From Sminthopsis crassicaudata (Eukaryota), in assembly GCF_048593235.1 (NCBI RefSeq), contig NC_133622.1, positions 236,809,198-236,873,197 on the forward strand: 64,000 bases of DNA, read 5' to 3'. Position numbers and translations under genes: made by a program. Shown here one piece after another: positions 11,610 through 63,090 of the stretch (the first letter of the stretch is position 1; each line of letters begins with the position of its first letter). Below the pieces are notes generated by a model, which had not been told where the DNA came from, searched no databases, and saw nothing but the letters and a program-made list of their open reading frames with translations.

Positions 11610-11780
11610 AAGTAATTGAAGCAGGCATTCAATCTTTCCCAAGTCATTGTTTCTTTGCAAAGTTCTCTCTCGAGGGAGCCAAAGAAGACCTCAGAGAATC
11701 TGATCTCCTGATATTAGCTTCTGTGTTAGTACATTTCATAAGGCTAGGGCACCTCAGAATTGCAATCATGCAGGTGAGTT
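11610..11780 (+). promoter_or_regulatory. Candidate promoter/first exon of OR4B1-like copy 1
   Basis: TAATTGA homeodomain-type site at 11613, O/E-like TCTCGAGGGA and CCTCAGAGA, consensus donor CAG|GTGAGT at 11774. The block is much better conserved with 18640-18810 than the surrounding spacer is. Confidence 0.6.
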
Positions 11781-12916
11781 TCTGATGTCACACAAGGGGA
11801 AGAGCTGTGGCTTTGTTGCCATCTGTACTTCTTTCCTCCTTCTAGGAGAAGGGACAAAAGGATTGGCCATGTAATCTTGAACCGGGTTCCAAATGATTCC
11901 TCTGCCATAGGACACCATTTGGTTATTTTCAGAGATCATGAAGTGTCTTGAGATTTGGTGTAGCTGGGTGAAAGCACATTATAAACTGTGATTCAGCAAT
12001 AACAATAGCAAAGTTGATGCCATGGGGAAGGTAAGACTGTCTAATGAAAAGGTTATTAAATGGAGAGACAGATTCTAGATGGTTGTTGACTATGAATAGT
12101 TGGGTCATCTTGAGCAAGGCATTTCTTTCTGAGTCTCATTTATCATCTTTGATCAAATGAAAAGTTGCATTGGATGACCTCAAAATCCTTTAAAGTTATG
12201 ACATTGAATATTTTGTATTATAGGTCCCCTCCAGTACTGAATTTTACATTCAGTATTTTAAGCAGTGCTCTTCTTTCACTTCATTACCAATAACCATGGG
12301 TTTTTACCAAGGCTTTGTTCGGTATGCAAAGGATTTTCAGAATCAACTGTCTAGGATTCTTGAGGAAGGAAATAAGTCAAAAGAGACCTGAAATTTAAGG
12401 GCAGGAAATACTATAACCCTCGGGATATTCTTCTTAGCCACTGGCTCACTTTTAATTCCCATGGTCTGGGCTTTGGTGGAAAGGTACATCGTGGAAGCTG
12501 AGAAGTATCTTTTAAGAAAGGGAAATCAGACAGAGAAACTATTTATAGAAGGTTGAGAAGGGAGGGACAATAAAGCAAGGAGAGAGAGCTATTAGATAAC
12601 ATTATTTTCCTCTTCTCCCTCCCCAATTCCTTTGTGTTCCCTATTAAGGGAAACTTGGTCCTCTGACCCTCAGACCACTACAACCTGAAACTAGTACCAT
12701 TACCTGTAACAAAATATGAACTCCTTGGAAGTGTGCAGTTTTAAAATAAAATTTCTAATCTTTGCATGATGTCTCTACATATAATAGATGGTTAACAAAA
12801 TTTTTTTTGAGTTTAATGAATTAGAATCACCTACTACTCTTGCAATGACCTTGTAGCTTTATATTTGTAAAAGTTAGAAGTAGCAAACTAACATATTTAT
12901 TTTGTTTACCTATGCA

Positions 12917-13076
12917 NNNNNNNNNNNNNNNNNNNNNNNNNNNNNNNNNNNNNNNNNNNNNNNNNNNNNNNNNNNNNNNNNNNNNNNNNNNNNNNNNNNN
13001 NNNNNNNNNNNNNNNNNNNNNNNNNNNNNNNNNNNNNNNNNNNNNNNNNNNNNNNNNNNNNNNNNNNNNNNNNNNN
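12917..13076. other. Assembly gap (160 N)
   Basis: N run. Confidence 1.
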
Positions 13077-13693
13077 GATCTGATCAACCTAAGAATACAA
13101 GTAAGTGGAGATGTGACTTGGTACATTTTGAAGTAAAAATATCTTTTTTGTTGACTGTCAGCAATAAAACCATTTGTTTATAAGAAATAGAGTTATAGTA
13201 AGGAAGGAACCTCATATCTACTTCTTGATCTTCTAATCTGCTGTAATTCTTACCATTTTTTTCATTTCATTTTTTTTTTTTTTGGGTAAACCTTTTCTGG
13301 GTAGCTAACCTGGATTTCTAGTTTTTATTGTGACAGATCATGTGTCTTTCCAAAAAGTTTGAACCTATCTAGAACTCTGCCAACAGCTGATTTCTTTTTT
13401 TTTACTTATATTCAAACCACATTTGATTTGAGCCTTCGTGTTACCTTTGGCATTCTGATGGGTGTAAAGGGAGAATTTCAAGGTTATTTTCATTTGCATT
13501 TCTCTGATCATTAGAAAATTAGGAGGATTTTTTTGTTGTTGTTGTAACAGATGATCAATTTTGCTTCTAGGTCAAGAATGGCCTGTTCATAATCTTGGAT
13601 TGTTTGTTAAATGAACATTAAGCTTACTTTCATGCAGCTAGGTGCTGGGGCCAGCTCTTCCTCTCTGAAGAGGCCACTGTTGTTGGTTGTGGG

Positions 13694-13858
13694 TTTTTTT
13701 TTTTTTTTTTTTTTTTGGTTTTGCTGAGGCAATTAGGATGGAATGAGTTGCCCAGGGTCACACAGCTAGCATGTATTAAGTGTCTGAGGTCAAATTTGAA
13801 CTCAAGTCCTCCTAACTTCAGGGCTGGTGCTTTATCCACTGCCCCACCTAGTAGCTCC
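13694..13858 (-). mobile_element. Marsupial tRNA-derived CORE SINE
   Basis: CAGGGTCACACAGCTAG..TGTCTGAGGTCAAATTTGAACTC..TATCCACT..CACCTAG with a poly(T) tail on the + strand. Confidence 0.85.
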
Positions 13859-14779
13859 ATTGTTGTGTTTTTAGTGTGAGCATTTCTATGAAACTGACAA
13901 AAATGACAAAACATTATAAAACTTGAATTATTATTTAGTTGAATGTTTAGACTTAAGGAAATGTTAATAATACATATTAGATTTGGAAATTCATCATACA
14001 TTTTGGGGATCCAGTTAAATACTTTTTAGCAAACCCAATTCAATTAACAGCATCAGTTTTTCAGGCAGAGTACCTTATTTGTCTAGTTTTGCTTTTCAGA
14101 CACTTAACAGGGTTGACTTGTAAGTTCATGTGTATGGTTCTGGTGCACAAATCAGAAGGGGAAAAAGAGAATGAGGAGAGGGAGATAGGAGAGAAAGAGA
14201 ATGAGAATTTATGGAATTAGCTAAAAATTAAGTGAAATATAAGGAAATAAAGACAGCAACATATCAAAAATTATTCTTTATGGTCATGTAAAAATTATAC
14301 CAGGGTTTCAAGGACAGTTTAGTATTAGAAAAGTAATTATAAATAAATTACAGCTTTCCCCAATAGCCTCCAAACTTCATCGAGGCTTCTGCCTTTTGAC
14401 CAAGTTATATTATTTGGTTACTTTTAAAAATTTAAATTGTGGTTAATAACAGTTGCATTTGAAGTTTTGCTTTTCCGTCTTTTTTTTGGGGGGGGAGGAG
14501 AGGTAAATTCTACATGTGGTCTAAAATGGAATCAGTTTGGGTAGATGTTTCCTGTGTTTTTGTGATAGAAATTTACTTGCCTGACTTTCCACTGTGCATA
14601 GGGAAGAATGCTCTCTAGAGTCAGAGAAGCCGAGTTGAACCTTTCCTGAAATGTGACATGAGGTAAGTCACTTATTATAGTCTCCTTGGGTGCCAGTTTT
14701 TTCAACAATAAAAGGAGTGAGTTGGATTGGATGTCTCTGTGGTCCCTTCCAGCACTAGCTTTATTATCCTATGATCCAG

Positions 14780-15030
14780 TCAGTTCTATGGTGCAGTGGA
14801 TAGAGCACTGGGCCTGAAGTTAAGAAAACATGAATTCCACTCTGGTCTGAAACACTTGCTAGCCATGTGATCCTGATCAAATCACCCTTGTTTGCCTCAG
14901 TTTCCTCATCTATAAAATGAACCGGAGAAGGAAATAGCACACCACTCAAGTGTATTTGCTAAAAAAACTCCCAACAAACCCAAATGGGGGCACTAAGGGT
15001 CCACCATGATTAAAGTAACTGAACAACATA
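14780..15030 (+). mobile_element. MAR1/MIR-type SINE
   Basis: GGTGCAGTGGATAGAGCACTGGGCCTG head and CCTCAGTTTCCTCATCTATAAAATG core. Confidence 0.75.
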
Positions 15031-15644
15031 CAAATCTTTCTAATGTTTGGTTCAAGTTTCTACCATCTTTATTTATTTATTTATTTTTTTGTGATACATC
15101 GTATTTCTTTAGGAGATTATTGAATCATTATATGAATGATGGTTTTCTCTGTTCAGCCTTTTGCAATTCAGTTAACTTTACAATTTTAGTTATTAGATCA
15201 TTGGGTGTCCAAATATTTATTCAATGTGATATGGTTGAAAGAGTAATAGCCTTGACGTTATTAGATGCACTAGCTATGTGACTTTATATTTGTTTACTTA
15301 TTATTTAGATTCATTTAGAGAAATTAGATTTATATTCCTAATAATTTTTTGGCACACAAAAGGCTCTTAACACATGCTTACTGTCAGGTTGAGAGAGAAA
15401 ATAGAGTATTGATACTTGTAGTAATTAGTAATGAGCTACTGGTAACTCATAGCTTCTTTTGAGGATTAAATGAGATAATGCATGTTTTGCAAACTTTAAA
15501 ATTTGAAATAAAATCCATTTCAATGGTAACTATTATTTATTATTGATTCTTCCTATTCTAAGTGATCCCTTTTTAAAAATTCTTGTCATGATATTTAAAA
15601 AAAAACAAATTGCTTATATTTCTCTTTTATTATTCCTGATTTAA

Positions 15645-15830: not shown

Positions 15831-16341
15831 CTAATTTCAATTCACCTTCTTATGCAAGTATAACTATTAAATTTCTGAAGTCGTATCCGATATTGTAAAT
15901 TTTAATTGACCCTTCTCAGTTAACATTTTGAAGCAACTGATTTGCATATACTTTAAAACTTGCTCTATGTCATCATCACCTATTACAATGTGAGTTCCTT
16001 GAGAGTAAAGGCTGTGTTTGCTATTCTATTCTAATCCTAGAAGACACCACAAAATTTTATTGAAAATAAGCACTTAATAAGTACTTTTTACCCAATCATC
16101 TATACATCTATTTCTTCATTTATCTATCCATACTTTTATTAATTCACACATCCATGCATTTATGCATCAGTATATTCATCCATCCTTCCATCTCTCACTC
16201 TGTCCCTCCATACATCCATGCATCCTTTTTGTTGTACTTGTTGCAGGAAACTGTCTTAATAATTACAGTGGCCTAATCTACGTTTGTCTTATTTCAGGGC
16301 TACTGAGCTTCTTTAGCATTGATCTGACATGATTGGATTCC

Positions 16342-17271
16342 ATGGCTGTGGCAAACAACGTGACCCAATTACTATTCACAGGTCTCTTCCAGGATCCAGA
16401 AGCACAGAGAATTTCTTTTGTGGTGTTTCTTCCTGTGTACATGGCCACAATGTTGGGCAACGGTCTCATCATCTTAACTGTCAATACCAGCAAGAGTCTG
16501 AGCTCTCCTATGTATTTCTTTCTTAGTCACTTGTCCTTAGTAGAGATCTGTTACTCCTCTACTGTTGTTCCTAAATTCATTTCTGGCTTATTGGTAGAGA
16601 ATAAAACCATCTCTTTGGATGGCTGCATGACCCAGATCTTTTTCTTCCACTTCTTTGGGGTTGCTGAGATCCTCTTGCTCACAGTGATGGCCTATGACCG
16701 GTATGTAGCCATCTGTAAACCCCTGCACTACATGACCATCATGAATCGCCCTGTGTGCCACGTGCTGGTGTTTAGTTCCTGGTTAGGGGGCATATTCCAT
16801 TCTGTGATTCAGATCCTCATTACTATCCAATTGCCCTTCTGTGGTCCCCATGTGATCGACCATTATTTCTGTGACCTCCATCCCTTATTCAAGCTTGCCT
16901 GTACTGACACTTTTGTGGAGGGAATCATTGTTTTAGCCAATAGTGGTTTATTTGCTATGATTTTCTTTCTCTTATTGATTTCTTCTTATATTGTCATCTT
17001 GGTTCACTTGAGAAACCAGTCAGCAGAGGGGAGACGCAAGGCCCTGTCTACTTGTGCCTCCCACATCACTGTTGTCCTTTTATTCTTTGGTCCTGCTATT
17101 TTTCTCTACATGCGGCCCTCTTCCACCTTCACTGAAGACAAACTCGTGTCCGTGTTCTACACGATGGTCACTCCAATGTTGAACCCCATTATTTATACCT
17201 TGAGAAATGCAGAAGTAAAGAACGCCATGAAGAGATTGTGGAGGAAGAAATTGAACTTGGGAGGGGAATGA
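16342..17271 (+). CDS. OR4B1: Olfactory receptor OR4B1-like, copy 1 (309 aa from the true ATG)
   Basis: Full OR motif set; FTGLFQDP, FFHFFGVAEILL and RPSSTFTEDKL match recalled OR4B1. The ORF-track start 16333 is TTG; the first in-frame ATG is 16342. Acceptor TTATTTCAG ends at 16297. Confidence 0.93.
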   Translation: MAVANNVTQLLFTGLFQDPEAQRISFVVFLPVYMATMLGNGLIILTVNTSKSLSSPMYFFLSHLSLVEICYSSTVVPKFISGLLVENKTISLDGCMTQIFFFHFFGVAEILLLTVMAYDRYVAICKPLHYMTIMNRPVCHVLVFSSWLGGIFHSVIQILITIQLPFCGPHVIDHYFCDLHPLFKLACTDTFVEGIIVLANSGLFAMIFFLLLISSYIVILVHLRNQSAEGRRKALSTCASHITVVLLFFGPAIFLYMRPSSTFTEDKLVSVFYTMVTPMLNPIIYTLRNAEVKNAMKRLWRKKLNLGGE

Positions 17272-17924: not shown

Positions 17925-17984
17925 ATCCACAAACTTATATATATATACATATATATATATGTATATATATATAAGTTTGTGGAT
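17925..17984. repeat. Perfect 60-bp spacer-less palindrome
   Basis: ATCCACAAACTT(AT)5A C ATATAT|ATATAT G T(AT)5 AAGTTTGTGGAT, checked base by base. Confidence 0.97.
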
Positions 17985-18639
17985 CTGCTCAACCTAAGAA
18001 TACAGATAAAAGGGGGGCACATGTATATTTATGTAGATACTTAATATATGTGAGACATATGACATGCAAATATCTTTTTTATTGAAAATCAGGTATAAAA
18101 CCTGTAAGGAATGGAATCACAATGAGGAAGAAAACTCTTATGTTCCCTCCTTTTAACTTCTCATAGGTGATTCTTATCATCTTTCCATTCACCCCTTCTT
18201 CCTTCTCCCTTTTCTGAGGATCTTTTGGAAGCACTAGAGGTCTTTCCTAACTCTTTAAAAAGATCATTAGTTTACTAGGGAAGCTTCTTGGCTGTCCATC
18301 TCTTATGCCCATTTAATTTTTTTTGTCATTTAATATGTTAGGTACTTTTGTATCCCTTTTTTGGGTTAAATTTCTACCCAATTCTCTTTCCCTTCAGTTT
18401 TTGTAAAAAAAAAGTTATTTAAAATAAAGGAGTTATGAACAAATGAGGTCATAAAATATCAGACGAGTGAGATGCTGAAGAACAACAAAAGTAAGCTAAT
18501 TGTTGTAACATGGTATAGCTAAATAACTTTCCAGAGAGGAGGGAGAGAACAAGATCTAGTGCTGGTCAGCTAACTCTACCTTCCACAGAGATCCCTAGCA
18601 ATGTAGCACTAGAAATGGGAAATAACTCTGTATTCTAAA

Positions 18640-18810
18640 CAAGTAATTGAAGCAGACATTCAACCTTTCCTATTATTTCTTTGGCAAAGTTCTCTCCTGA
18701 GGGAGCCAAGGAAGACCTCAGGGAATTTGATCTCCTGATCTTAGCTTCTGTGTTAGTGCATTTCATAAAGCTAGGGCACCTCAGAATTGCAATCATGCAG
18801 GTGACTTTCT
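18640..18810 (+). promoter_or_regulatory. Candidate promoter/first exon of OR4B1-like copy 2
   Basis: TAATTGA at 18644, CTCCTGAGGGA, CCTCAGGGA; donor variant CAG|GTGACT at 18801. Confidence 0.58.
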
Positions 18811-19299
18811 GATGTCACACAAGGGGAAGAGCTGTGGCTTTGTCATCTGTACTTCTTTCCTCTTTCTAAGAGAAGGGACAAAAGGATTGGCCATGTAATC
18901 TTGAACCGGGTTCCAAATGATTCCTCTGCCATAGGACACCGTTTGGTTGTTTTCAGAGATCATGAAGTGTCTTGAGATTTGGTGTAGCTGAGTGAAAGCA
19001 CATTATAAACTGTGATTCATTAATAACAATAGCAAAGTTGATGTCATGGGGAAGGTAAGAGGGTCTCGTGGAAAGGGTATTGAATGGAGAGACAGATTCT
19101 AGATGTCTGTTGACCATGAATATTTGGATGGTTTTGAGCAAGGCATTTCTTTCTGGGTCTCATTTATCCTCTTTGATCAAATGAAAAAGTTGCCCTGGAT
19201 GATTGAATGTTTTGTATTATATGTCCCCTCCAGCACTGATTTCTACATTTAACATTTTAAGCTCCATTCCTCATTCTCTTTTGTGTGTTCTTCATCCAG

Positions 19300-20397: not shown

Positions 20398-20400
<3 letters not shown>

Positions 20401-20469
<69 letters not shown>
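20401..20469. repeat. (AG)n microsatellite
   Basis: Direct reading; the paralogous site near 12515 has no long repeat. Confidence 0.98.
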
Positions 20470-20471
<2 letters not shown>

Positions 20472-22054
20472 CATTTTCTATTATGTGTTGATATTTAAGG
20501 TCAATACAGAAGTTATATATCCTGTTTTTGACACATATTGAAACCAATCACCTTATTTCACACAGAATAGTGCAAATTTGAAAAATGAAACTACTTTATG
20601 AGATCCATTGCTCCTAGTAATTGGGACCTATCTATGTTCAAGCCATAGCCATTGCTTGCTTGTTTCTATTTTTTTCTTTTGGTAAAGCTTTTCCCGGCTA
20701 ACCTGGATTCATAGCTTTTCTGGTAGCATAATCTCATGTTGCTTTCCAAAAAGTTTGAATCAATCCAAAGCTGGGCCAACAACTGATTTGTTTTTTTATT
20801 CATGGCCAAACCAGCATTTAATTTGTTTATTTGTGTTACCTTTGGCATTTTAATGGGTGTAAGATGGAATTTCAAGGTCATTTTTATTTGCATATCTCTG
20901 ATTATTAGAAAATTGAAAGATTTTTGTTGTTGTAATGGAAGATCAGTTTTCTTTTAAGTCAAGAATGGCCTTTCAGATCTTTGGACCTCTTGTTAAGTGG
21001 AGATGAACCTTCTTATTCTCATGCAACCAGGTTCTGGATCCAACTCTCACTCTCTCTCTGAGGAACCCATTATTTCAATTTTACTTTGAGCATTTCTACC
21101 TCAGAAATTGGCAAACTTCTACTACAAAATTCAACTACAAAGAATTACAAACTCAATTTATTGTTTTGTTGAGTCTCCAGGCTTTAGAAAGGGATTGGGG
21201 AAATGTTACTTATACAGATTAAACTTGAAAGTGAATCATATATTTTAGGGATCCAGTTGGATATTTTAGAATACCCAATTCATTAATGGTGTCAGTTCTT
21301 CAGGTAGAGTACTTTCTTCTCTAATTTAGAAGAGTTTTTGTTTTTCAAATGTTCAATAGCTTTGACTTGTAAGGTTAGTCATTCTTTAGATTCACTTAGA
21401 GATCTCATTCTTTAGATTCTTATTCCTAATAATTCTTGGCAAACAGAAGTCTCTTCATACATGCTCACTGACAGACTGAGAAATAAAATAGTGATGTTAA
21501 TACTTGTAATTAGTAATGAGTTACTTGTAACTTTTAAGATTATTTTGAGCATTAAATAAGATAATACATGTAATATATTTTGCAAATCTTAAAGTTCTAA
21601 ATAAAATCCATTTGAATAGTAACTATTATTTATTATTGAGTAGCTTTTCCATCTCAGTGGTCTCTTCATTTTCTTTGATCCTTGCCATGGTCTTTTAAAA
21701 ACATACAGTACCCATGTTTTTCTCTTTTATTATTTCAGGATTTAAATTCAATTTGTTATATGACTATAACTTTTAAATTTCTGATCAGAACAAATATAAT
21801 GAATTTGAATTCACTCTTCTCAGTTAACATTTTTGAAGTTCCTGACTTCAGATAATTTAAGAAACTTGCTATATTTTCTCTTTCCCTGCTAGAATATGAG
21901 TTCCTTAAGAGCAGGGACTGTGTTTGCTATTCTGTTCTCCATTTGTTATACTTGTTAAGGAAAGTGTCTTAATAATTACGGTGGCCTAATCTACATTTGT
22001 CTTATTTCAGGGCTACTGAGCTTCTTTAGCATTGATCTGACATGATTGGATTCC

Positions 22055-22984
22055 ATGGCTGTGGCAAACAACGTGACCCAATTACTATTCACAGGACTCT
22101 TCCAGGATCCAGAAGCACAGAGAGTTTCTTTTGTGGTGTTTCTTCCTGTGTACATGGCCACAATGTTGGGCAACGGTCTCATCATCTTAACTGTCAATAC
22201 CAGCAAGAGTCTGAACTCTCCTATGTATTTCTTCCTTAGCCACTTGTCCTTAGTGGAGATCTGTTACTCCTCTACTATTGTTCCTAAATTCATTTCTGGC
22301 TTATTGGTAGAGAATAAAACCATCTCTTTGGATGGCTGCATGACCCAGATCTTTTTCTTTCACTTCTTTGGAGTTGCTGAGATCCTCTTGCTCACAGTGA
22401 TGGCCTATGACCGGTATGTAGCCATTTGTAAACCCCTGCACTACATGACCATCATGAGATGTCCTGTGTGTCAGATGCTGGTGTTTAGCTCCTGGTTAGG
22501 GGGCATGTTCCATTCTGTGATTCAGATCCTCATTACTGTCCAGTTGCCCTTCTGTGGTCCCCATGTGATCGACCATTATTTCTGTGACCTCCATCCCTTG
22601 TTCAAGCTTGCCTGTACTGACACTTTTGTGGAGGGGATCATTGTGTTTGCCAATAGTGGTTTATTCTCTGTGATTTCCTTTCTCTTTTTGATTTCTTCTT
22701 ATGTTGTCATCTTGGTTCACTTGAGAAACCAGTCAGCAGAGGGGAGACGCAAGGCCCTGTCCACTTGTGCCTCCCACATCACTGTTGTCCTTTTATTCTT
22801 TGGTCCTGCCATTTTTCTCTACTTGCGGCCCTCTTCCACCTTCACTGAAGACAAACTTGTGTCCGTGTTCTACACGATGGTCACTCCAATGTTGAACCCC
22901 ATTATTTATACCTTGAGAAATGCAGAAGTAAAGAATGCCATGAAGGGATTGTGGACCAAAAAAGTGAACTTGAGAGGGGAGTGA
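22055..22984 (+). CDS. OR4B1: Olfactory receptor OR4B1-like, copy 2 (309 aa)
   Basis: Paralog of 16342-17271 with 20 aa differences counted by eye; all OR motifs intact. The track start 22046 is TTG; ATG is at 22055. Confidence 0.93.
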   Translation: MAVANNVTQLLFTGLFQDPEAQRVSFVVFLPVYMATMLGNGLIILTVNTSKSLNSPMYFFLSHLSLVEICYSSTIVPKFISGLLVENKTISLDGCMTQIFFFHFFGVAEILLLTVMAYDRYVAICKPLHYMTIMRCPVCQMLVFSSWLGGMFHSVIQILITVQLPFCGPHVIDHYFCDLHPLFKLACTDTFVEGIIVFANSGLFSVISFLFLISSYVVILVHLRNQSAEGRRKALSTCASHITVVLLFFGPAIFLYLRPSSTFTEDKLVSVFYTMVTPMLNPIIYTLRNAEVKNAMKGLWTKKVNLRGE

Positions 22985-27144: not shown

Positions 27145-28074
27145 TCATTTCTCATTTTTCTTCAGTGTCCTGACCCACAATTTCCTCATGGCATTCTTCA
27201 CTTCAGAATTTCTTAAGGAGTAGATAATTGGGTTCAAGAGAGGAGTGATCACTGTGTAGAATACGGCTACCATTTTGTCAACAGAAAGTGTGGTGGAGGG
27301 CCGCATATAGATGAAGATGCAGGGCCCAAAGAGTAAGACAACCACAGTAATGTGTGAGGCACAGGTGGAGAGAGCCTTTTGGCGTCCCTCCTTGCTGTGC
27401 CCTCTCAGGTGTACCAAGATGACAGCATAAGAGGTAAGGAGAACCCCAAAACTAATCAGTGAAAGGCTCCCACCATTAACCACAATGAGCTGACCTATGA
27501 AGTAAGTGTCAGTGCAGGCAAGTTCCAGCAGAGGGAGTAGGTCACAGAAATAGTGGTCAATCACATTGGGGCCACAGAAGGGTAAACGGAACATGAGGAG
27601 AATTTGGGCAATTGAGTGGAGGAAGCCACCCATCCAGGACACCCCCAACAAGAGCCCACACATCTGCTTGCTCATAATTGTCATATAGTGTAGAGGTTTA
27701 CATATGGCCACGCACCTGTCATAGGCCATTATTGTCAGTAGGAAGATTTCAATACCACCAAAGAAATGCATAAAGAATAGCTGTGTGATACAGCCCTCTA
27801 GGGAGATGGTTTTCTTTTTAACAAGTAAATCCACAATGAGTTTGGGAGATGTAGTGGAAGAATAGCAGATCTCCACAAAGGAGAGATGACTGAGGAAGAA
27901 ATACATAGGAGAGCCAAGGCTTTTGCTGCATTTGATAGTTAACACTATGAGAGAATTCCCCAACACTACAGCAGTATACATGAGCAGAAACACCACAAAG
28001 AAAACTCTCTGAACTTCTTGTTTGGAAGAGAATCCTAGAAAAATGAATTCTGTCACATTGCTGGTTGGCAGCAT
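27145..28074 (-). CDS. OR4X2: Olfactory receptor OR4X2-like, copy A (309 aa; MAYDRC variant)
   Basis: Intact OR ORF; C-terminus LWVRTLKKNEK and NGGSLSLISFGVLL resemble recalled OR4X2. AG acceptor 5 nt upstream of the ATG. Confidence 0.92.
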   Translation of the reverse strand: MLPTSNVTEFIFLGFSSKQEVQRVFFVVFLLMYTAVVLGNSLIVLTIKCSKSLGSPMYFFLSHLSFVEICYSSTTSPKLIVDLLVKKKTISLEGCITQLFFMHFFGGIEIFLLTIMAYDRCVAICKPLHYMTIMSKQMCGLLLGVSWMGGFLHSIAQILLMFRLPFCGPNVIDHYFCDLLPLLELACTDTYFIGQLIVVNGGSLSLISFGVLLTSYAVILVHLRGHSKEGRQKALSTCASHITVVVLLFGPCIFIYMRPSTTLSVDKMVAVFYTVITPLLNPIIYSLRNSEVKNAMRKLWVRTLKKNEK

Positions 28075-29224
28075 GATTGCTAGTCAAAGGGTCAAGAATT
28101 CTTTGAAATCTATAAATCAATAGCCAAAGTCTTAAATCAGAATGGTGGCCAAAGGCAGAACCGCCTATTATTCATAGAATGGTCAACAGGGTAACTGCAA
28201 GGGCCGATTTATCAGGTGATAATTAAAAATCAAATTACTGTAAGGATCATTAACAATATAGGATCTGAGGGAGTACAGTTTTCGGATGTAAAAGCACTCT
28301 CATCATTGAGATAGGGATTAGTCAGGAAGATCCTTGAGAATGAGAAATGAAGAGGAATCAGCCAGGGCTGTAGAACTTGGGAGACTTATTCAGTGTACCC
28401 CAATTTATGACTTTAAACTCTCCTGCTCCTTTTGCTGGAACTGCTGTTCTTGGGTAGGCCACAAAGCATGGGGAATTTGCTAGGAGAGGATCCTGTGAAA
28501 TGGTGCAAAAGAAGAAATCCAGTCTTTGAAATTAGTTGTGTCATTGTCACAGCAACATAGCATTTGTAAGGCACCTTAAAGATCATCTCATTTAATCCCT
28601 TATTTTATAATCAAAAAAACCAAGGCTCAGGGAGTTCAATTTAGCAAGTATTCATTAAGAATCTAAGTTATACAATACATCATGCAGAGCACCAAAGATA
28701 AGGAAACAAATGAAACAAAAAAGTAGTTTTTTCTCTCAAGAATGTTTATTCCTCTGGAAAAATATATACACATACATATATGTGTATATGTGTATCCATG
28801 TTTTGATATATATGTAATCTATTGATATATATCATAAAACTTATCAATTAAAAGGCATTTACTTTTCATTGCCCCTCTATTCTCCTCCCTCCTTGACAAT
28901 TCAAAAGCAAACTGATTTTTTAAAAAATAAATTTACATGACCACATTGGTTGTGTCCAAAAATGTCCGTCTTATTCTACACTTTGAATCCATCACTTCTC
29001 TGGCAGGAAGGAGGTCGCATGCTTCATTGTTAATCTTCTGAAATCTTGGATTGATATTATACAGAACAAAGTTTACAAGTCTTTCAAAGTTGTTTTTCCA
29101 CTATAATGTTATTTTTATTGTATAACTTTTTTATTATGGAATTTGGGATAAAGCATCTCCACATAGGATTTAATCCAAAGTAATTCAATTACCATGTGTA
29201 AAAGAAGGACCTAGGAAGATGTCA

Positions 29225-30326: not shown

Positions 30327-30457
30327 NNNNNNNNNNNNNNNNNNNNNNNNNNNNNNNNNNNNNNNNNNNNNNNNNNNNNNNNNNNNNNNNNNNNNNNNNN
30401 NNNNNNNNNNNNNNNNNNNNNNNNNNNNNNNNNNNNNNNNNNNNNNNNNNNNNNNNN
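30327..30457. other. Assembly gap (131 N)
   Basis: N run. Confidence 1.
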
Positions 30458-30603: not shown

Positions 30604-32024
30604 ATCATGGAATTCCTTGGCTTTTTCAGAGCCAAATCCAGTTACTTTTACAAACCCAAGTGTAGTAGGCAGACAATAGTTACATAAACAATAGTTACAT
30701 ACATCAACAACTGGATTTTACTAAGAACATATTACTGTTGAGATTGAATTTTGGGTGCAATTTTAAAAAAAAACCCTCCAAACTCCAAACAGGTACTTAA
30801 TTAATGTTTGGTGATTAAATTACTTCCAGAGCTGAATAGAGTTGATCACAGAATACAACTATATCTTTTTTGGAAAACACTCCCCTACCTGATTTCTCTG
30901 TATATTTTTAAAGCTCCAGTGAAAAAAGCCTTATGGGGCCTGAGCTTGTAAAACATCTAAAAAAAGTTAAACATGGTTCAGGCAATGAAGGGTTGACTTT
31001 AAAACCTGGTCACTCAGCTTTCTCCATTTCTCTTAATTAGCTAGTCAGAAGGACCATGATTTATCCCGCCTGGCATTCCTTTTGACTCCTTGAACATCTG
31101 GAAAGTAGAATTATTTTCTTCTTGAAAGTCCCTGGGAGTTCATAAGAACTGTTTCTGTTCTCAGCTATGTTTAAGAGGTAAGAAGGTCTTCCCAACCCAA
31201 AGCTAGTAAGCTTTAGAATTATGAAACATTACAGAATATGAGGAACATTAGGCCCAGAAAGATCAACCAATTAACATTTATTAAGCACTTTATTGCAGAC
31301 ATTGTGCTAAGGGTTGGGATACAAAGAAAGACAAAAGGCAGTCTCTGCTTTCAAGGGGTTCACAGTCTAATGTTCTAGAGATAAACAAAGTCACGGAGGC
31401 AAAGATTGAATACATGACTTGTGAATTTACAACCAATACTTTTCTAGAGCTGCTTCTTGGAATATAGAATTTGAGAATTATAAGGGACTCTAGTGGTCAT
31501 TTAGTCCAACCTATACCTGAAGAAGAATCCTTACTAAAAAGAGCCTGACAAGTGTCTACTCAAAGATCTATTGTGAGGGAGAACTTCTTCCCACTGGCTG
31601 CCATGATTGACTATTCTACTTTTGGATCATTTAAGGTAGGTCTTTCCAACCTGGGATCCATCAACTTCTTAAGAAATATTTGATAACTTTCAATGTAATG
31701 ATATTTCACATATTTCATTTTAATAATAATCTTATATATTTTATTTTTTATGTAGTTAACCCTGAGAAAGATTCCAAGGACTTCAATAGGCTAGCTAAGA
31801 CAAACACTCACATTCACCATGAAGACCTCCTTTTCTATTAAAAAAGTTTCACCCCTGCCATGAAACCTTAATTTCATCCTTCAGCACAGTTGGGCTTCCA
31901 CCCATTTCAATGGGAGTCCAGAAAATCCAAGGGAAGTCAAAGAGGATGAAACAATGAAATTGGGCTTCTCAGGGGACCAGGCACAGGAAGCTCTGAATTC
32001 CTGGTCTCCCTCCACCTTCTTTAC

Positions 32025-32101
32025 CTTTTCTGAATCACAGGAATCATGGATGGCGGATGAGCAGCTCCAAACTATCTCATCTCACATTTTAGCTTAAGGA
32101 G
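32025..32101 (-). other. Putative 77-nt 5'-UTR exon of OR4X2-like copy A
   Basis: Minus strand reads TTTTTCTCCAGTTTCCTGACAG|...GAAAAG|GTAAAG; identical splice sites in copy B. Confidence 0.5.
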
Positions 32102-33039
32102 CTGTCAGGAAACTGGAGAAAAATAGATGAGATATCTCAGAAGCAAATCTATGATCCTATTATGATCTATAATATAATATCTGAATAATCCAAGTTGAAA
32201 GGGAATATCTAGGTCAACTCTCTCATTGCAGAGATGCAATTTAATCCCACCATTGTCTAAGTATCTACTGAGTGCAAAGTGTTGTTAGACACTAGAGATA
32301 CAAAGCAAGGACAAAACAGTCACTCTTCTCTGGGAGCTTAGGTTTTGCTGAGAGAACTGCTTAGAGAAATAAAATTCGAAGGTCTCAGATATAGTAAATT
32401 GCAGTCAGGATTCTAACCCAGAACTTCTACCTCAAAATGCAGATGATTTGTCATTAAGCCAAGTAATGTAGCTAATTTTATATATAGAAGCAGTTAAAGA
32501 ACAAACCTTACGACATCCTTCATATGAAATATGACAATATAAGGAACCAGGGACACCAGTTTCACTATAAAGATGTCAGGAAGACTTAAAATTAATTTCA
32601 CAGAAAACCAGGATCTCATGGCTAGCTATTAAATTATTAATAGTCCAAGAATTAGAAAAAAATACTTCAATTAATCTCCTTAATCATTGTTTCTAGTTAG
32701 AGCTATGGAAAGGAATCTACCCCTGTTCTTTCTTTGAATAGACAAATTTAATCATTAAAAAAAAGTCCTTCCCAAGGATGTATGATCTGAGACTTGGTCA
32801 AGTATAATGATTTTCATAGAGGAAAGGTCTTTTTAAAAACAATTTTTTAAAATTGTCAGATATTTTTCTCCCTCTCACTTCCTACTCAACAACAACAACA
32901 ACAACAACAAAAACATAACCTCATAACAAATACACATAGATAATTCCATTTCTGAGGAAATAGCTGATACCAGTTAGCAGAAAATTAGCCCTCCCTAACC
33001 TTCTTTTTATTCACCATATTCCCTGAAAGTGACTCAACT

Positions 33040-33420
33040 GAGAATGGGCTTCCCCTCTCTCTAACTAAGCAGCCTGGAAAGATTGCTATGATTCTTGAGG
33101 AGTGCCAGCCAAACATGGAATAATAGCACAACAACAGAAAGTCAGAGCCCACCTCAGTACATGGATTCAGCTAAGAAAATTTCCCTTCTTATCTGAGATT
33201 AGATCTAAGGGGTGAAGTAGAAATAGGTACCCAGATTTCAGCTTATCTTGTTCTAAAAGCCACTAGTCAATAAGATGATTGGGGAAAAAAGCCCAAAGTT
33301 TATCTAATGGAAAACTGAATTAGGGAATTGAGATCCCCTGAAGCTTCCCATTGTCTCCTGTCAGGGGACTTTCCCCAGTAGACTAAATTAAACTTGTAAG
33401 TTAAGGAACCTTTGTTCTAA
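33040..33420 (-). promoter_or_regulatory. Candidate promoter/first exon of OR4X2-like copy A
   Basis: Its reverse complement aligns with 54525-54930 (GGGGAAAG, TCAGGG, AATTCCC, GCTTTTAGAACA, CTGAG|GTGGG); about 5.2 kb upstream of the ATG. Confidence 0.6.
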
Positions 33421-33592
33421 TCCCCAGCTTCTTAAATTGTGCTCGTGACCCCCAAATCTCATAACTCAATTGACAAATTATGATTTATTATTAGTAAATA
33501 TTTGATTTGAACGACTACTTTATATATCCATATTCCTAGGATGCCATGAAAGAATGGGTCATGAGTGGTAAAACTTTGAGAAGCTTTGGTCT
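33421..33592. mobile_element. Old hAT-like MITE next to the promoter (paralog 49347-49540)
   Basis: Termini CCAGCTTCTTAAA and TTTAAGAAGCCTTGG in copy B, with TCTAAT on both sides. Confidence 0.5.
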
Positions 33593-33660
33593 AATTCATC
33601 AAATAAAAAATTACTGCTTTTCATCACATATTAAATTGATCCGACATTTTAAAAATTATA

Positions 33661-42342: not shown

Positions 42343-43272
42343 TCATTTCTCATTTTTCTTCAGTGTCCTGACCCACAATTTCCTCATGGCATTCTTCACT
42401 TCAGCATTTCTTAAGGAGTAGATAACTGGGTTCAAGAGAGGAGTGATCACTGTGTAGAATACGGCTACCATTTTGTCAATAGAAAGTGTGGTGGAGGGTC
42501 GCATATAGATGAAGATGCAGGGCCCAAAGAATAAGACAACCACAGTAATGTGTGAGGCACAGGTGGAGAGAGCCTTTTGGCGTCCCTCCTTGCTGTGCCC
42601 TCTCAGGTGTACCAAGATGACAGCATAAGAGGTAAGGAGAACCCCAAAACTAATCAGTGAAAGGCTCCCACCATTAACCACAATGAGCTGACCTATGAAG
42701 TAAGTGTCAGTGCAGGCAAGTTCCAGCAGAGGGAGTAGGTCACAGAAATAGTGGTCAATCACATTGGGGCCACAGAAGGGTAAACGGAACATGAGGAGAA
42801 TTTGGGCAATTGAGTGGAGGAAGCCACCCATCCAGGACACCCCCAACAAGAGCCCACACATCTGCTTGTTCATAATTGTCATATAGTGTAGAGGTTTACA
42901 TATGGCCACGCACCTGTCATAGGCCATTACTGTGAGTAGGAAGATTTCAATACCACCAAAGAAATGCATAAAGAATAGTTGTGTGATACAGCCTTCTAGG
43001 GAGATGGTTTTCTTTTTAACAAGTAAATCCACAATGAGTTTGGGAGATGTAGTGGAAGAATAGCAGATCTCCACAAAGGAGAGATGACTGAGGAAGAAAT
43101 ACATAGGAGAGCCAAGGCTGTTGCTGCATTTGATAGTTAACACTATGAGAGAATTCCCCAACACTACAGCAGTATACATGAGCAGAAACACCACAAAGAA
43201 AACTCTCTGAACTTCTTGTTTGGAAGAGAATCCTAGAAAAATGAATTCTGTCACATTGCTGGTTGGCAGCAT
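42343..43272 (-). CDS. OR4X2: Olfactory receptor OR4X2-like, copy B (309 aa; MAYDRC variant)
   Basis: Paralog of 27145-28074 at constant offset 15198 with 11 nt and 7 aa differences counted by eye. Confidence 0.92.
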   Translation of the reverse strand: MLPTSNVTEFIFLGFSSKQEVQRVFFVVFLLMYTAVVLGNSLIVLTIKCSNSLGSPMYFFLSHLSFVEICYSSTTSPKLIVDLLVKKKTISLEGCITQLFFMHFFGGIEIFLLTVMAYDRCVAICKPLHYMTIMNKQMCGLLLGVSWMGGFLHSIAQILLMFRLPFCGPNVIDHYFCDLLPLLELACTDTYFIGQLIVVNGGSLSLISFGVLLTSYAVILVHLRGHSKEGRQKALSTCASHITVVVLFFGPCIFIYMRPSTTLSIDKMVAVFYTVITPLLNPVIYSLRNAEVKNAMRKLWVRTLKKNEK

Positions 43273-43960
43273 GATTGCTGGTCAAAAGGTCAAGAATTTT
43301 TTGAAATCTATAAATCAATAGCTAAAGTCTTAAATCAGAATGGTGGCCAAAGGCAGAACCGCCTATTATTCATAGAATGGTCAACAGGGTAACTGCAAGG
43401 GCCAATTTATCAGGTGATAATTAAAAATCAAATTACTGTAAGGATCATTAACAATATAGGATCTGAGGGAGTACAGTTTTCGGATGTAAAAGCACTCTCA
43501 TCATTGAGATAGGGATTAGTCAGGAAGATCCTTGAGAATGAGAAATGAAGAGGAATCAGCCAGGGCTGTAGAACTTGGGAGACTTATTCAGTGTACCCCA
43601 ATTTATGACTTTAAACTCTCCTGCTCCTTTTGCTGGAACTGCTGTTCTTGGGTAGGCCACAAAGCATGGGGAATTTGCTAGGAGAGGATCCTGTGAAATG
43701 GTGCAAAAGAAGAAATCCAGTCTTTGAAATTAGTTGTGTCATTGTCACAGCAACATAGACTTTGTAAGTCACCTTAAGTGACTTACATTTGTAAGTCATC
43801 TCATTTAATCCCTTATTTTATGATCAACAAAACCAAGGCCCAGGGAGTTCAATTTAGCAAGTATTCATTAAGGGTCTACATTATACAATATATCATACAG
43901 AGCACCAAAGATAAGGAAGCAAAGGAAACAAAAAGTAGTTTTTGCTTTCAAGGAACTTTT

Positions 43961-44176
43961 NNNNNNNNNNNNNNNNNNNNNNNNNNNNNNNNNNNNNNNN
44001 NNNNNNNNNNNNNNNNNNNNNNNNNNNNNNNNNNNNNNNNNNNNNNNNNNNNNNNNNNNNNNNNNNNNNNNNNNNNNNNNNNNNNNNNNNNNNNNNNNNN
44101 NNNNNNNNNNNNNNNNNNNNNNNNNNNNNNNNNNNNNNNNNNNNNNNNNNNNNNNNNNNNNNNNNNNNNNNNNNNN
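43961..44176. other. Assembly gap (216 N)
   Basis: N run. Confidence 1.
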
Positions 44177-59198: not shown

Positions 59199-60128
59199 AT
59201 GGTACAGCCTGGAAATGTGACAGAATTCATTTTTCTAGGACTCTCTCATAATCTAAAGATTCAGAGAATTTGTTTTGTGCTGTTTTTGTTCTTGTACGTG
59301 AGTATTGTATTGGGGAATTCTCTCATTGTGTTGATTGTCAATTTCAGCAAGAACCTTGATTCCCCCATGTATTTCCTCCTCAGTCACTTCTCTTTTGTGG
59401 AGATCTGTTATTCCTCAACTACTTCCCCCAAACTTATTGCAGATTTACTTGCTGAGAGGAAATCCATCTCTCTAGAGGGCTGCCTCACCCAAGTGTTCTT
59501 TATCCACTTCTTTGGTGGCATCGAGATGTTTGTTCTCATAATAATGGCTTATGACCGATACTTGGCCATCTGTAAGCCTCTGCACTACATGTCCATTATG
59601 AACCCTTGGATTTGTGGCCTCCTGGTTGGCACGGCCTGGTTGGGAGGCTTTTTACACTCAACTGCCCAAATTCTCCTTATATTCAACTTACCCTTTTGTG
59701 ACTCTAATGTGATTGACCATTATTTCTGTGATGTTCTCCCTCTGTTGGAACTGGCCTGCACGGACACCTTCTTCATTGGGTTGCGTATTGTGGCTAATGG
59801 AGGGAGCCTGACAGTGGTCAGCTTCATAATTCTCCTGACTTCTTATAGTGTGATCTTGTTCCATCTAAGGGGGCACAGTAAGGAAGGACGCCGAAAAGCC
59901 CTCTCCACATGTGCTTCCCATATCACTGTAGTTGTCTTATTCTTTGGACCCTGTGTCTTCATCTACCTGAGGCCCAACACCACTTGCTACATGGACAAAA
60001 TGGTGGCCATATTCTACACAGTGATTACTCCCCTCCTCAACCCAGTCATCTATTCCTTGAGGAATGCTGAAGTGAAGAATGCCATGAGGAAGCTGTGGGT
60101 CAGAATGGTGAAACAAGGAGAGACATGA
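59199..60128 (+). CDS. Olfactory receptor, OR4X subfamily-like (309 aa, intact)
   Basis: Complete OR motifs ([40 protein letters not shown]). Acceptor TTTTGATTCAG ends at 59193. Confidence 0.92.
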   Translation: MVQPGNVTEFIFLGLSHNLKIQRICFVLFLFLYVSIVLGNSLIVLIVNFSKNLDSPMYFLLSHFSFVEICYSSTTSPKLIADLLAERKSISLEGCLTQVFFIHFFGGIEMFVLIIMAYDRYLAICKPLHYMSIMNPWICGLLVGTAWLGGFLHSTAQILLIFNLPFCDSNVIDHYFCDVLPLLELACTDTFFIGLRIVANGGSLTVVSFIILLTSYSVILFHLRGHSKEGRRKALSTCASHITVVVLFFGPCVFIYLRPNTTCYMDKMVAIFYTVITPLLNPVIYSLRNAEVKNAMRKLWVRMVKQGET

Positions 60129-61546
60129 AATGAGAGACTCCTGATATTAATTTGCCCTGAATCAAAATGGGTAAAATCCAGGGAAGTTCAATTGTAGTAG
60201 AACATAGTAGATAATATATTTATCAGAAATAGGACTTGAAGAAAAATTCAAAATGGCTTTCTTTGAACACAGAAGTCATGAAAATATTCTTTTATTGTGT
60301 TCATCAAATTTTGCTTTGGATATTGTTTTTTAAAATATATATATTTTATGTATCTGATTGTATATGGATATATTAAATTGTGATTATATTTTCAATCTTT
60401 AATTTCTTGGGGGCAGACTGGTATAATGGACAGAGCAATGATTTGATCTGAATCTTGATTAAGCTACTTAGTAGTTGTATGACCTTAGGCAAATGATAAT
60501 AATGATAACTAATATTTAGATAACAATGAAATTGGTTAAGCAATTTTCATGTGTCATCTCATTTCATGTTTGCAACAACACTGTGAGGTGGGTTCTATTA
60601 TTATCTTTATTATACAGTTAAGGAAAATGATGTTAAGAGAAATTAAAGTACTTGCCCAAGGTCACATATGTAATAAGTATCTGAAGTAGGATTTGGAATT
60701 AGGTATTTCTGATTCCAGATCTAGCACTCTCTCCTTTAGGCCAGTTTCTTCAGTCTCCTAAGTCTTAGTGATTTTTAAAACAACTTCTTATTCTAATCTT
60801 TCATGAATATCAAAGAAATATTTTCTTCTTCATATCTTGGCTCTCTTTTATCTTGATTATAATTGCCCTGCATTATATTTATCTTTCTACATAATGTATT
60901 CTGATTTGTAGATTGTAAGTTCCTTGAGGAGAGGGATGAAATACTTTTATATCTTTATAACCAAGTCTGGAACACTGTCTTCAACTTAATAAAGAAATGT
61001 TTTTGGATCAGAATTTGTTTTCAAACCCTGATGGTACCTGAATACCATTTGCATATAGACTGTCCACACTGGATCACAAACTAGTAAATATCAAGTATCT
61101 GAGCCAGAGATTTGAACTCCTGACTCCAGTTCTGGTGCTCTCACATGCCATTCTTGATATCTCCAACTCTATGTAATCACGATGGCCAAGTTACTGACCC
61201 TCTCTGAGCTTCAGTTTTCTTATATATAAAATGAATCTGATATTATCTGTAGTACCTATCTCAGAGTTTCTCTTTGTGAGGCTCAATTGAAATAATTTCT
61301 GTATAGAGTTTTCAAAAATTTCAAGTGCTAAATAAATGTTATTTATTATTATGATTATAGGGAGTTGTCCAGAAAATCCTGGACATGGCACCATTGGTTT
61401 CTGATCAAATGTAGGATAGTACTCATAGAGTGCCTGGGCAGGGAGGAGGGCGGTGTAATATTATTGATCTGGAAGGTTCAAAGTAGACTCATTATAAAGA
61501 AACTTGAGAGTGAGGGAAGAAGAATGGGTCTGTGTAGATTTCCTTT

Positions 61547-61728
61547 NNNNNNNNNNNNNNNNNNNNNNNNNNNNNNNNNNNNNNNNNNNNNNNNNNNNNN
61601 NNNNNNNNNNNNNNNNNNNNNNNNNNNNNNNNNNNNNNNNNNNNNNNNNNNNNNNNNNNNNNNNNNNNNNNNNNNNNNNNNNNNNNNNNNNNNNNNNNNN
61701 NNNNNNNNNNNNNNNNNNNNNNNNNNNN
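61547..61728. other. Assembly gap (182 N)
   Basis: N run. Confidence 1.
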
Positions 61729-61830
61729 TTTCCCTTTCTGTTTTGTTTTCCCTTTCCCTTTCCTTTTCCCTTTCCCTTTCCTTTTCCCTTTCCCCTTCCC
61801 CTTTCTCCTTTCCCCTTTCCCTTTTCCTTC
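61729..61830. repeat. (TTTCCC/TTTCC)n pyrimidine repeat abutting a gap
   Basis: Direct reading. Confidence 0.9.
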
Positions 61831-62334
61831 ACTTTTTGTTCCCTTCTCTTGCCAAGGCTGCATATTTTCATAATTTCAAGTCTTTGAGATGATCTCTTCT
61901 GGCCATTCTTAGCCTATCTGTCTTTTAAAAGAATTCCAAGAACTGAACTCAGTGTTTCATATGTGATCACAGCACACCAAAGTAGCAAGGTCATTAATTC
62001 CCTAATCCATGATATTCTTCTATTTTTAAAGTTCAGCATAAGACAGTGGGAGCTAAATAAGCTGCCATGACTCACTCTTGACTCTTAATGAACTTGAACT
62101 AGCTCATCTTTAGATATCTTTCAAAAGAACTGGTGTTTATGTTCTCTCAATTCTTTAACTGAGGTTTGAGCTGTCTCCAACATGCTCTTAGAATTAGGAA
62201 GTATCTTAAAGTTCTTTTAATCTAACATTTGCTGATTCTAGGATCCTGTGCAGTGAAAATTGAGTGAAATACACCATTTATTTCTGACCAAATATAGGTT
62301 AATATCCAAAGAATTTTTTTGCTTATTGGTTGTC

Positions 62335-62527
62335 TCTCTATGTGTATATGCATGCATATGTATAGGTGCAGGAGTGCATGCACATAAATTTATATGTAAG
62401 TGTGCATGTGACAGCACCTGTGTGTGCATACATGCATGTGTGTATGTACATGTACAAGGGTGTATGTTTGTGCATATGTGCTTTGGAAAATATGTGTGTT
62501 TGTGTTTGTGTTTGTGTGTGTATGTGT

Positions 62528-62570
<43 letters not shown>
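62335..62570. repeat. Compound (TG)n / (TGCA/TGTA)-type repeat
   Basis: Direct reading; only ~35 bp long at the paralogous site 54338-54372. Confidence 0.95.
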
Positions 62571-62573
<3 letters not shown>

Positions 62574-62714
62574 AGGCAAATTAGGGTGTATGTGGTAGGT
62601 CCAAGTCATCATGGTAGCTTTTTAGTTAGTTCTCTGAGGCCATCTGAAGATGGACTGGGTACAGATGGGGAGAGACATGCTTTCTTCTTTCTGATTCTGA
62701 GGGAGGAAGAGGAG

Positions 62715-63090
62715 ACTAAACAAAGGTGCCCTTTTAGAAGTCCAGGATTTCTGATTGGAATAATTAATTGTACATTTACCTTAGTCTTCTGGGGAAAGGT
62801 CTTTGATGGGGAGTGTTTGAAAACCTCAGGGGCCTCAATTCCCTGATTTCAGTTTTCTGGCTTCTAAACTTAAGGCTTCTTCAGAGTAGAAATAATTGCT
62901 TCTGATCCTTCTGTTCTAGCTTTTAGAACAGAAAGGGCTAAGGCACAAGTGAATTTATAGCTCTGATATCAATGAGGAGGAGGAAGAAATCCACAACCTG
63001 AGGTGGGCACAGTGCTAGCGTTCCTTATGTGTTTAGTATCCTCGGAGTGCTATAGCAAACTCCCTGCCACTCACTAAGAGAGAGGCAAAT
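62715..63090 (+). promoter_or_regulatory. Candidate promoter/first exon of an OR predicted beyond the window
   Basis: Paralog of 54525-54930: TAATTAAT at 62761, CCTCAGGGG, ATTCCCTGA, GAG|GTGGGC at 63003. Confidence 0.55.

Follow-up and report, generated by a model that had tools for sequence, protein, structure and literature searches.

Olfactory receptor (OR) gene promoters are characterised by homeodomain and O/E (Ebf) sites near the transcription start, approximately 300 bp are enough for expression, and conservation is raised around OR start sites (PMC5318403, PMC12547500, PMC3247239). The class II OR promoter studies reviewed in PMC5318403 and PMC12547500 include those of Vassalli 2002, Hoppe 2003 and 2006, Rothman 2005, Michaloski 2006, Clowney 2011, Young 2011 and Plessy 2012, and the survey of Young et al., which covered placentals only, found conserved elements in 68 of 314 promoters (PMC3247239). 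The Greek Islands, H and P elements are few per cluster, and carry a composite motif with side-by-side homeodomain and O/E sites, for which enrichment is described at enhancers but not at promoters (PMC12547500). Here we describe six core segments (seg0 to seg5) in a 64-kb stretch of DNA from Sminthopsis crassicaudata (fat-tailed dunnart), hereafter the window, which fall into three types: A (seg0 and seg1), B (seg2 and seg3) and C (seg4 and seg5). Judged from sequence, each segment is quite probably the best-kept part of a module of ~250–350 bp that combines the proximal promoter and a short non-coding exon 1 of a family-4 OR gene.

Read in this way, the modules are an ordinary case of the known OR promoter type. 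They share with class II OR promoters an AT-rich setting, a module size of ~300 bp, a local conservation peak, a TAAT-type site accompanied in types A and B by an O/E-like site within ~100 bp, and the arrangement of one gene-oriented module per gene, a few kb upstream of a single coding exon. They differ in that the dunnart start position is predicted from sequence, that the dunnart O/E matches are imperfect, with none within one mismatch in type C, that the modules carry an extra conserved palindrome-like motif (YTCAGRGA-N6-8-TYYCYYRA), and that module conservation spans marsupials to dog and mouse. Like the Greek Island enhancers, the modules are conserved noncoding islands with homeodomain and O/E motifs in OR clusters; unlike them, they occur once per gene, have the two sites 45–50 bp apart and are followed by splice donors, and they do not conform to the Greek Island definition of a side-by-side composite motif and few elements per cluster, each serving many genes. 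Hoppe's work of 2003 and 2006 reportedly described subfamily-wide conserved promoters in the mouse OR262 cluster and OR37 subfamily, and V1R promoters are said to be another case of conserved promoters in a chemoreceptor array. As in those arrays, tandem paralogues in the dunnart keep a promoter block while other noncoding DNA decays; the subfamily and species are different, and the link between the dunnart OR4B and OR4X modules is marginal.

Duplicate structure and conservation of the cores

An earlier note on this DNA had claimed six similar segments, and all six are present where, and on the strands on which, it placed them. In the list below, G2 to G6 denote OR coding exons of the window.

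11657..11712, plus strand: type A core seg0, 4.6 kb 5' of the G2 start codon (ATG) at 16342
18684..18739, plus strand: type A core seg1, 3.3 kb 5' of the G3 ATG at 22055
33317..33376, minus strand: type B core seg2, 5.2 kb 5' of the G4 ATG at 28074
49243..49301, minus strand: type B core seg3, 6.0 kb 5' of the G5 ATG at 43272
54597..54656, plus strand: type C core seg4, 4.5 kb 5' of the G6 ATG at 59199
62791..62850, plus strand: type C core seg5, whose partner gene lies past the window end

The distances of 3.3–6.0 kb between core and ATG given in that note are correct, and those of seg0, seg2 and seg3 hang on estimated gap sizes. No assembly gap lies less than 1 kb from any core, and the flanks of the gaps at 12917-13076, 30327-30457 and 43961-44176 are colinear with glider or opossum orthologous loci, which indicates that the units across these three gaps are continuous; the gap at 61547-61728 is outside any core-to-gene interval. 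The pattern by which the earlier note defined the core matches exactly the six sites in the window and none elsewhere, with 0.02 expected, a count that is circular because the pattern was composed from the six segments themselves. No seventh core copy was found in the window.

Comparison of each segment with 1.5 kb of flank by blastn revealed three tandem-duplicate pairs, with 84% identity over 930 bp (pair A), 90% over 1.8 kb (pair B) and 70% over 1.2 kb (pair C), each of which corresponds to a pair of sister genes. The common orientation and spacing of the cores are thus inherited and do not constitute independent evidence: the statement that the core always lies in gene orientation holds as a description and loses its evidential weight, since whole units were duplicated. 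Within pairs A and B the core is no better kept than its flanks, a result to be expected of recent copies. A perfect 60-bp AT-rich palindrome lies at 17925-17984, between G2 and the seg1 module.

Orthologous loci, picked by exact protein matches and amounting to ~230 kb, contain the following elements (L numbers identify loci).

Monodelphis (opossum) L001: type B element, 4.0 kb upstream of the ATG in gene orientation, E 1.6e-35
Dromiciops (monito del monte) L002: type B element, 4.4–4.5 kb upstream, E 1.2e-36
Petaurus (sugar glider) L003: type B element, 4.0 kb upstream, E 4.1e-41
Gracilinanus L011: type C element, 5.45 kb upstream, 81.6% identity over 196 bp vs 65–67% in the intron
Petaurus L007: type A element, 8.5 kb upstream, E 3.5e-42
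Monodelphis L012: type A element, 3.6 kb upstream, E 4e-35
Dog OR4B1 L008: type A element, 6.3 kb upstream, E 8.5e-12
Dog L006: B-like element on the downstream side of OR4X2 and oriented towards the gene that follows, E 1.8e-14
Mouse L005:14049-14192: B-like element, 4.1 kb upstream of a frameshifted OR4X-like pseudogene (18210-19135), E 1e-5

Carried into orthologous upstream regions, as the earlier note had suggested, the search recovered types A, B and C in marsupials and succeeded in part in the dog (A and B-like) and the mouse (B-like). The opossum locus L012 holds a second type A copy further along, presumably serving the next gene of the array. For type C, the Gracilinanus element is 81.6% identical to the seg4 region (54506-54701) and 82% identical to the seg5 region (62700-62893).

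Dunnart and opossum introns still align at ~68.5% over the whole intron, so that element and background are directly comparable, and raised cross-species conservation over the surrounding noncoding DNA was found. The most conserved 50 bp of the 2.9-kb G4 upstream unit, 33341-33390, overlap the seg2 core and reach 94% identity vs a median of 67% across three marsupial orders; core identity across marsupial orders is 87–95%. In the OR4B type the earlier note's choice of core was displaced: the only stretch upstream of G3 that blastn aligned to the dog OR4B1 upstream region is 18635-18691, and the block common to marsupials and dog is the TAATTGAAGCAG region adjoining that core on its 5' side. 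We posit that each tandem duplication copied the module along with its gene, and that purifying selection would have preserved the module from a time before American and Australian marsupials diverged, the OR4B1 type and the B-like OR4X type having probably been kept since before the marsupial–placental split. Retention of the module for more than 80 million years in marsupials, and in part in dog and mouse, is the most likely reading of these alignments.

Synonymous divergence between the coding sequences is 0.9 for B vs C and 1.4–2.4 for A vs B/C, values at which unconstrained DNA should be unalignable between types. The B and C cores nonetheless match each other unaided by flanks (nhmmer E 6e-7 and 2e-6) at 72–75% identity. 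Sensitive blastn and MAFFT further showed the two types to be colinear for ~350 bp around the core, with 58–60% identity for more than 1 kb into the intron; the words 'otherwise unalignable', which the earlier note used of OR4B and OR4X spacers, do not describe B vs C. The relation of type A to B/C, examined with leave-one-type-out nhmmer profiles against 200 dinucleotide shuffles of the window, depends on the flanks. With the core alone the observed score was attained by 64/200 and 49/200 shuffles, and with 60-bp flanks by 0/200 and 1/200 (E 1.2e-4 and 3.3e-4), the matches with flanks being reciprocal best hits; the proposed OR4B–OR4X similarity is accordingly no better than shuffled controls for the 55-bp core and exceeds them once flanks are included. 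The best cross-type match of the B/C profiles was seg1 (E 1.2e-4, and 4.9e-5 in a later search).

The claim of a single ancestral OR4B/OR4X core has weaker support than the earlier note gave it: the profile matches are reciprocal but marginal (E ~1e-3 to 5e-5) and require the flanks, and core identity between A and B/C is just 47–60%. The OR4B and OR4X modules are likely to be of common ancestry; in each of five species the cross-type matches invariably hit the element of the other type. It could also be that A and B/C are real promoter modules without a common ancestor which came to resemble each other by convergence on sites and spacing, or by chance. The low identity of the cores and their shuffle-like scores when taken alone fit such an origin, as do cross-type E-values of just 5e-5 to 0.3, an O/E-like site that lies on opposite strands in A and B and differs in its internal spacing, and the failure of the B/X/C profile to match the dog type A element. 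We nevertheless regard separate origins as rather unlikely, given that the top non-self match or matches of every leave-one-type-out search were the other type's element on the gene strand, a pattern that the dunnart shows and that monito, opossum, glider and Gracilinanus each repeat independently, that so few shuffles attain the score with flanks, and that the order homeodomain, O/E-like site, palindrome and a spacing of 72–80 bp are common to the types.

Motif content and predicted splice signals

Homology, conservation, motif content and predicted splice signals are documented in this and the preceding section; that transcription starts at the modules and that Lhx2 and Ebf bind there is what we infer. 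As modelled, a TAAT-core homeodomain site of the Lhx2/Emx2 class would open the module and be followed ~45–50 bp on by an O/E (Ebf)-like site in types A and B, with a weaker match in C. An imperfect palindrome, YTCAGRGA-N6-8-TYYCYYRA, would stand ~10 bp beyond the O/E-like site, and a conserved splice donor would come ~85 bp (A) or ~190 bp (B and C) past the palindrome. A 5' untranslated region (5'UTR) intron of 3–6 kb would then link exon 1 to an acceptor 35–44 nt before the ATG. The motifs on which this arrangement draws are listed below; O/E-like sites were scored against TCCCYNGRGAR, a degenerate consensus given as the core in Table 1 of Young et al. 2011 (PMC3247239), and aligned positions refer to a core alignment of 14 sequences (the dunnart segments and orthologous elements).

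11613..11618, plus strand: homeodomain-type TAATTG of seg0, part of TAATTGAAGCAG
18644..18649, plus strand: homeodomain-type TAATTG of seg1, motif match upstream of the core
33414..33425, minus strand: altered homeodomain position of seg2 (GGGGATTAGAAC), from the 14-sequence alignment
49339..49350, minus strand: altered homeodomain position of seg3 (GGGAATTAGAAC), from the 14-sequence alignment
54566..54573, plus strand: homeodomain-type site TAATTAAT of seg4, motif match
62761..62768, plus strand: homeodomain-type site TAATTAAT of seg5, motif match
11667..11677, minus strand: O/E-like site of seg0, TCCCTCGAGAG, perfect match to the consensus
18694..18704, minus strand: O/E-like site of seg1, TCCCTCAGGAG, one mismatch
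33358..33368, minus strand: O/E-like site of seg2, TCCCCTGACAG, one mismatch
49283..49293, minus strand: O/E-like site of seg3, TCCCCCGACAG, one mismatch

A TAATTR or altered TAAT-type position is found 5' of all six cores, with a homeodomain motif near the O/E position, and the TAATT(G/A) sites claimed at 25–50 bp upstream of four cores are present at 26–44 bp. The motif alone is weak evidence, since TAATTR has a window background of 2.2 per kb. Dunnart, glider and dog have identical letters at TAATTGAAGCAG in the type A alignment, and the type B orthologues and the dog and mouse elements show GATYAATTA at the aligned homeodomain position (opossum and glider reading CAATTA, and monito, dog and mouse TAATTA).

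The window contains 25 O/E-like sites that depart from the consensus at no more than one position (0.39 per kb), three of them perfect, and 4/25 sit in the 5' halves of A and B cores, that is in four of the six cores. The distance from homeodomain to O/E-like site is 45–50 bp. Every type A, B and B-like orthologous element scored (Monodelphis L001, Dromiciops, Petaurus, dog and mouse) has an O/E-like site in the same place; the letters of the seg2 site are the same in opossum, monito and glider and read TCCCCAGACAG in dog and mouse. Types A and B thereby show the O/E motif of class II OR promoters, on motif matches. The scan bore out the expected combination of homeodomain and O/E motifs in part: all types have the homeodomain site, A and B have an O/E-like site within one mismatch, and C has a weaker match. 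The placement of the O/E site at CTCAGGG did not survive, as this is the poorer match with two to three mismatches to TCCCNNGGGA, and the best match falls within the 5' half (TCCCCTGACAG or, read on the other strand, TCCCTCGAGAG). In dog OR4B1 the CTCAGGG position has turned into a good O/E match (TCCATGGGGA).

The 14-sequence alignment gives the order homeodomain, O/E-like position and palindrome-like motif in all three types, the imperfect palindrome lying in the second half of the core. A speculative suggestion, which we hold to be doubtful, is that the palindrome might be the site of a dimeric factor specific to OR4B/OR4X rather than a degenerate O/E site; if so, it would be a subfamily-level cis code on where or how often receptors are chosen, predating the marsupial–placental split. 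Two paralogous perfect O/E sites (TCCCCTGAGAA) were also observed at 31966-31976 and 47899-47909 on the minus strand, ~1.35 kb downstream of the B cores and inside the presumed intron, in a region 73–77% conserved in other marsupials; an alternative promoter and an intronic element are both conceivable readings. A TATA reading of TAAATTTA, which occurs in B and C ~57 bp before the CA of CTCAGGG, was rejected because at that distance the CA is too far away to be its start.

The candidate splice signals are as follows, with a slash at the predicted exon–intron boundary of the donors; the acceptor scan used a pyrimidine tract threshold of ≥70%.

11771..11779, plus strand: candidate exon-1 donor CAG/GTGAGT of the seg0 unit, from the donor scan
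18798-18806, plus strand: candidate exon-1 donor CAG/GTGACT of the seg1 unit, paralogous to the seg0 donor
33147..33155, minus strand: candidate exon-1 donor GAG/GTGGGC of the seg2 unit, from the donor scan
49073-49081, minus strand: counterpart of the seg2 donor (GAG/GTGGGY) in the seg3 unit
54828-54836, plus strand: counterpart of the seg2 donor (GAG/GTGGGY) in the seg4 unit
63000-63008, plus strand: counterpart of the seg2 donor (GAG/GTGGGY) in the seg5 unit
16289..16297, plus strand: candidate 5'UTR acceptor TTATTTCAG, 44 nt before the G2 ATG
22002-22010, plus strand: the same candidate acceptor, 44 nt before the G3 ATG
1919-1926, plus strand: candidate G1 acceptor, 44 nt before the ATG
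28110..28120, minus strand: candidate G4 acceptor TTGATTTATAG, 35 nt before the ATG, chosen by eye within the 250 nt upstream
43308-43318, minus strand: the same candidate acceptor, 35 nt before the G5 ATG

Donors had been claimed 60–180 bp downstream of each core, and GT dinucleotides are found at 62–175 bp, at positions 11774 and 18801 (A) and 33152, 49078, 54831 and 63003 (B/C); donors of such strength occur at 0.25 per kb per strand. The type A donor reads CAG/GTGAAT in the glider, and the B/C donor (+190) lies inside a block invariant between B and C and is found in monito and glider. Five genes have a core at the appropriate position and strand upstream of an OR coding exon, and a strong donor follows each core. 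In the acceptor scan the distance between acceptor and ATG was identical (44 nt) in G1, G2 and G3, and no acceptor was listed at the scan threshold for G4 or G5.

Weighing the module as a probable promoter and exon 1

Several observations weigh against a promoter with exon 1 at each module. No B-type element was found within 8–10 kb upstream of dog OR4X2 or mouse Or4x6, and in the opossum the 10 kb upstream of an OR4B1-like paralogue (L010) yielded no A-type element. Both dunnart B copies have GGATTA or GAATTA and have lost the canonical TAATTA, type C has no O/E-like site within one mismatch (its best has two), and the motif matches are in any case matches to degenerate consensus sequences. 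The rise in GC around the cores is weak, the +190 donor was not found in the opossum, and start site, exon 1 and splice junction are sequence predictions. Finally, the glider C-lineage gene, orthologous to G6, is without the whole 4.15-kb element-bearing segment and retains an intact coding sequence.

Two of these subjects carry further observations. The GGATTA of dunnart type B resembles a bicoid-class (Otx/Pitx) site. The segment missing in the glider (L009:9227-9245 vs window 54327-58477) comprises the type C element together with exon 1 and the greater part of the intron, and its absence stems from either an assembly error or a deletion accompanied by a promoter switch. In the mouse we take the intact neighbour Or4x6, whose upstream 10 kb yielded no such element, to be Olfr1269 and the B-like element to lie upstream of Olfr1268-ps1, a tentative assignment made from gene spacing and an offset of 169,656 between the two mouse assemblies. 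The multi-exon mouse neighbour Olfr32, with its annotated 5' end at mm10 chr2:90,142,293 (PMC4154679 Dataset S2), would then presumably be the gene at the OR4B1 position. In the same dataset the expression value given for Olfr1268-ps1, if so matched, is ~0.09.

Some of this would also fit a gene-proximal enhancer, or a regulatory element of an intronic or alternative kind, with transcription starting elsewhere: the start position at the modules is a prediction, OR enhancers too bear homeodomain and O/E motifs (PMC12547500), the mouse copy stands upstream of a nearly silent pseudogene and the glider gene is intact without its module. We consider such an element improbable: the modules occur as one copy per gene, in gene orientation, at a typical 5'UTR-intron distance and with conserved strong donors after them, and their homeodomain and O/E sites, 45–50 bp apart, are unlike the side-by-side composite motif of enhancers (PMC12547500). 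The conserved stretch might instead work as RNA, through a 5'UTR hairpin TCAGGGA...TCCCTGA affecting translation or stability. In seg4, seg5, opossum, monito, glider and Gracilinanus the inverted repeat (7 bp, spacer 7 nt) has no mismatch, and it would be transcribed if the start lies upstream of it. The 14 aligned sequences, on the other hand, contain no compensatory double changes, all changes being one-sided or pairing-breaking, no Rfam family matches in the window, and the most conserved parts (the homeodomain block of A and the O/E-like block of B) fall outside the hairpin; with neither a covariance-model match nor covarying pairs, the cores do not behave as structured RNA, and this role appears very unlikely. 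A search of sequencing runs returned no RNA run containing this stretch; runs labelled 'RNA?' were rejected as RNA evidence and treated as DNA, since the share of the stretch in them scales with run size, like random genomic sampling.

It is hardly credible that the core is an interspersed-repeat fragment lying near OR genes by chance, even though the window is repeat-rich and 49.5–51.8 kb has very high contig depth in relatives. Copy number in the relatives, judged from contig depth and contig identity in four related species at ≥85% likeness, was approximately single-copy at seg4 and most of seg3 (bin 49100-49290), the last 11 bp of seg3 falling in an elevated-depth bin (49291-49481). In the ~230 kb of loci, significant matches occurred only in gene orientation upstream of OR genes or at a locus edge towards the next gene, and conservation is higher in the core than in its flanks, contrary to what a decaying repeat would show. 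In the loci and relatives compared, the cores lack the many dispersed copies unrelated to gene position that define interspersed repeats; an ancient repeat origin before exaptation is a possible variant. In the stretch 49482-51773, between the divergent B and C promoters, depth ranges from thousands to more than 1 million in the four relatives, which indicates high-copy interspersed repeats, and 49367-49514, immediately upstream of the seg3 module, is missing from the contigs of all four.

Receptor genes of the window and biological meaning

The window contains six intact family-4 OR coding exons (Pfam 7tm_4, E 1e-49 to 4e-54), and the OR4B1-like and OR4X2-like assignments were made from named relatives.

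1971-2906, plus strand: G1, OR coding exon
16342-17271, plus strand: G2, intact OR4B1-like coding sequence, paralogue of G3
22055-22984, plus strand: G3, intact OR4B1-like coding sequence, paralogue of G2
27145-28074, minus strand: G4, intact OR4X2-like coding sequence, paralogue of G5
42343-43272, minus strand: G5, intact OR4X2-like coding sequence, paralogue of G4
59199-60128, plus strand: G6, intact OR4X2-like coding sequence, C lineage

The coding sequences of G4 and G5 are 98.8% identical (synonymous divergence, dS, 0.019), whereas their upstream and intron DNA is only ~90% identical (31863-33653 vs 47800-49609). G2 and G3 show a weaker version of this contrast, with a dS of 0.11 vs 84% noncoding identity. 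Coding identity so far above upstream and intron identity suggests that gene conversion may be restricted to the coding exons. In the glider, a V1R-like or TAS2R-like gene (Pfam V1R, TAS2R) lies at L009:19741-20634 on the minus strand, ~9 kb downstream of the OR4X2-like gene.

The modules leave the present picture of OR gene regulation unchanged. Six dunnart OR genes, represented in public models by the coding exon only, gain from them a precise promoter annotation that is open to test. A modest point of interest is that some OR promoters would be conserved from marsupials to placentals, with detail at the level of single sites. Three cases may in turn serve as natural experiments on what share of the module an OR gene requires: the glider gene that lacks it, the dunnart B copies, altered at the homeodomain position, and the mouse pseudogene that retains it.

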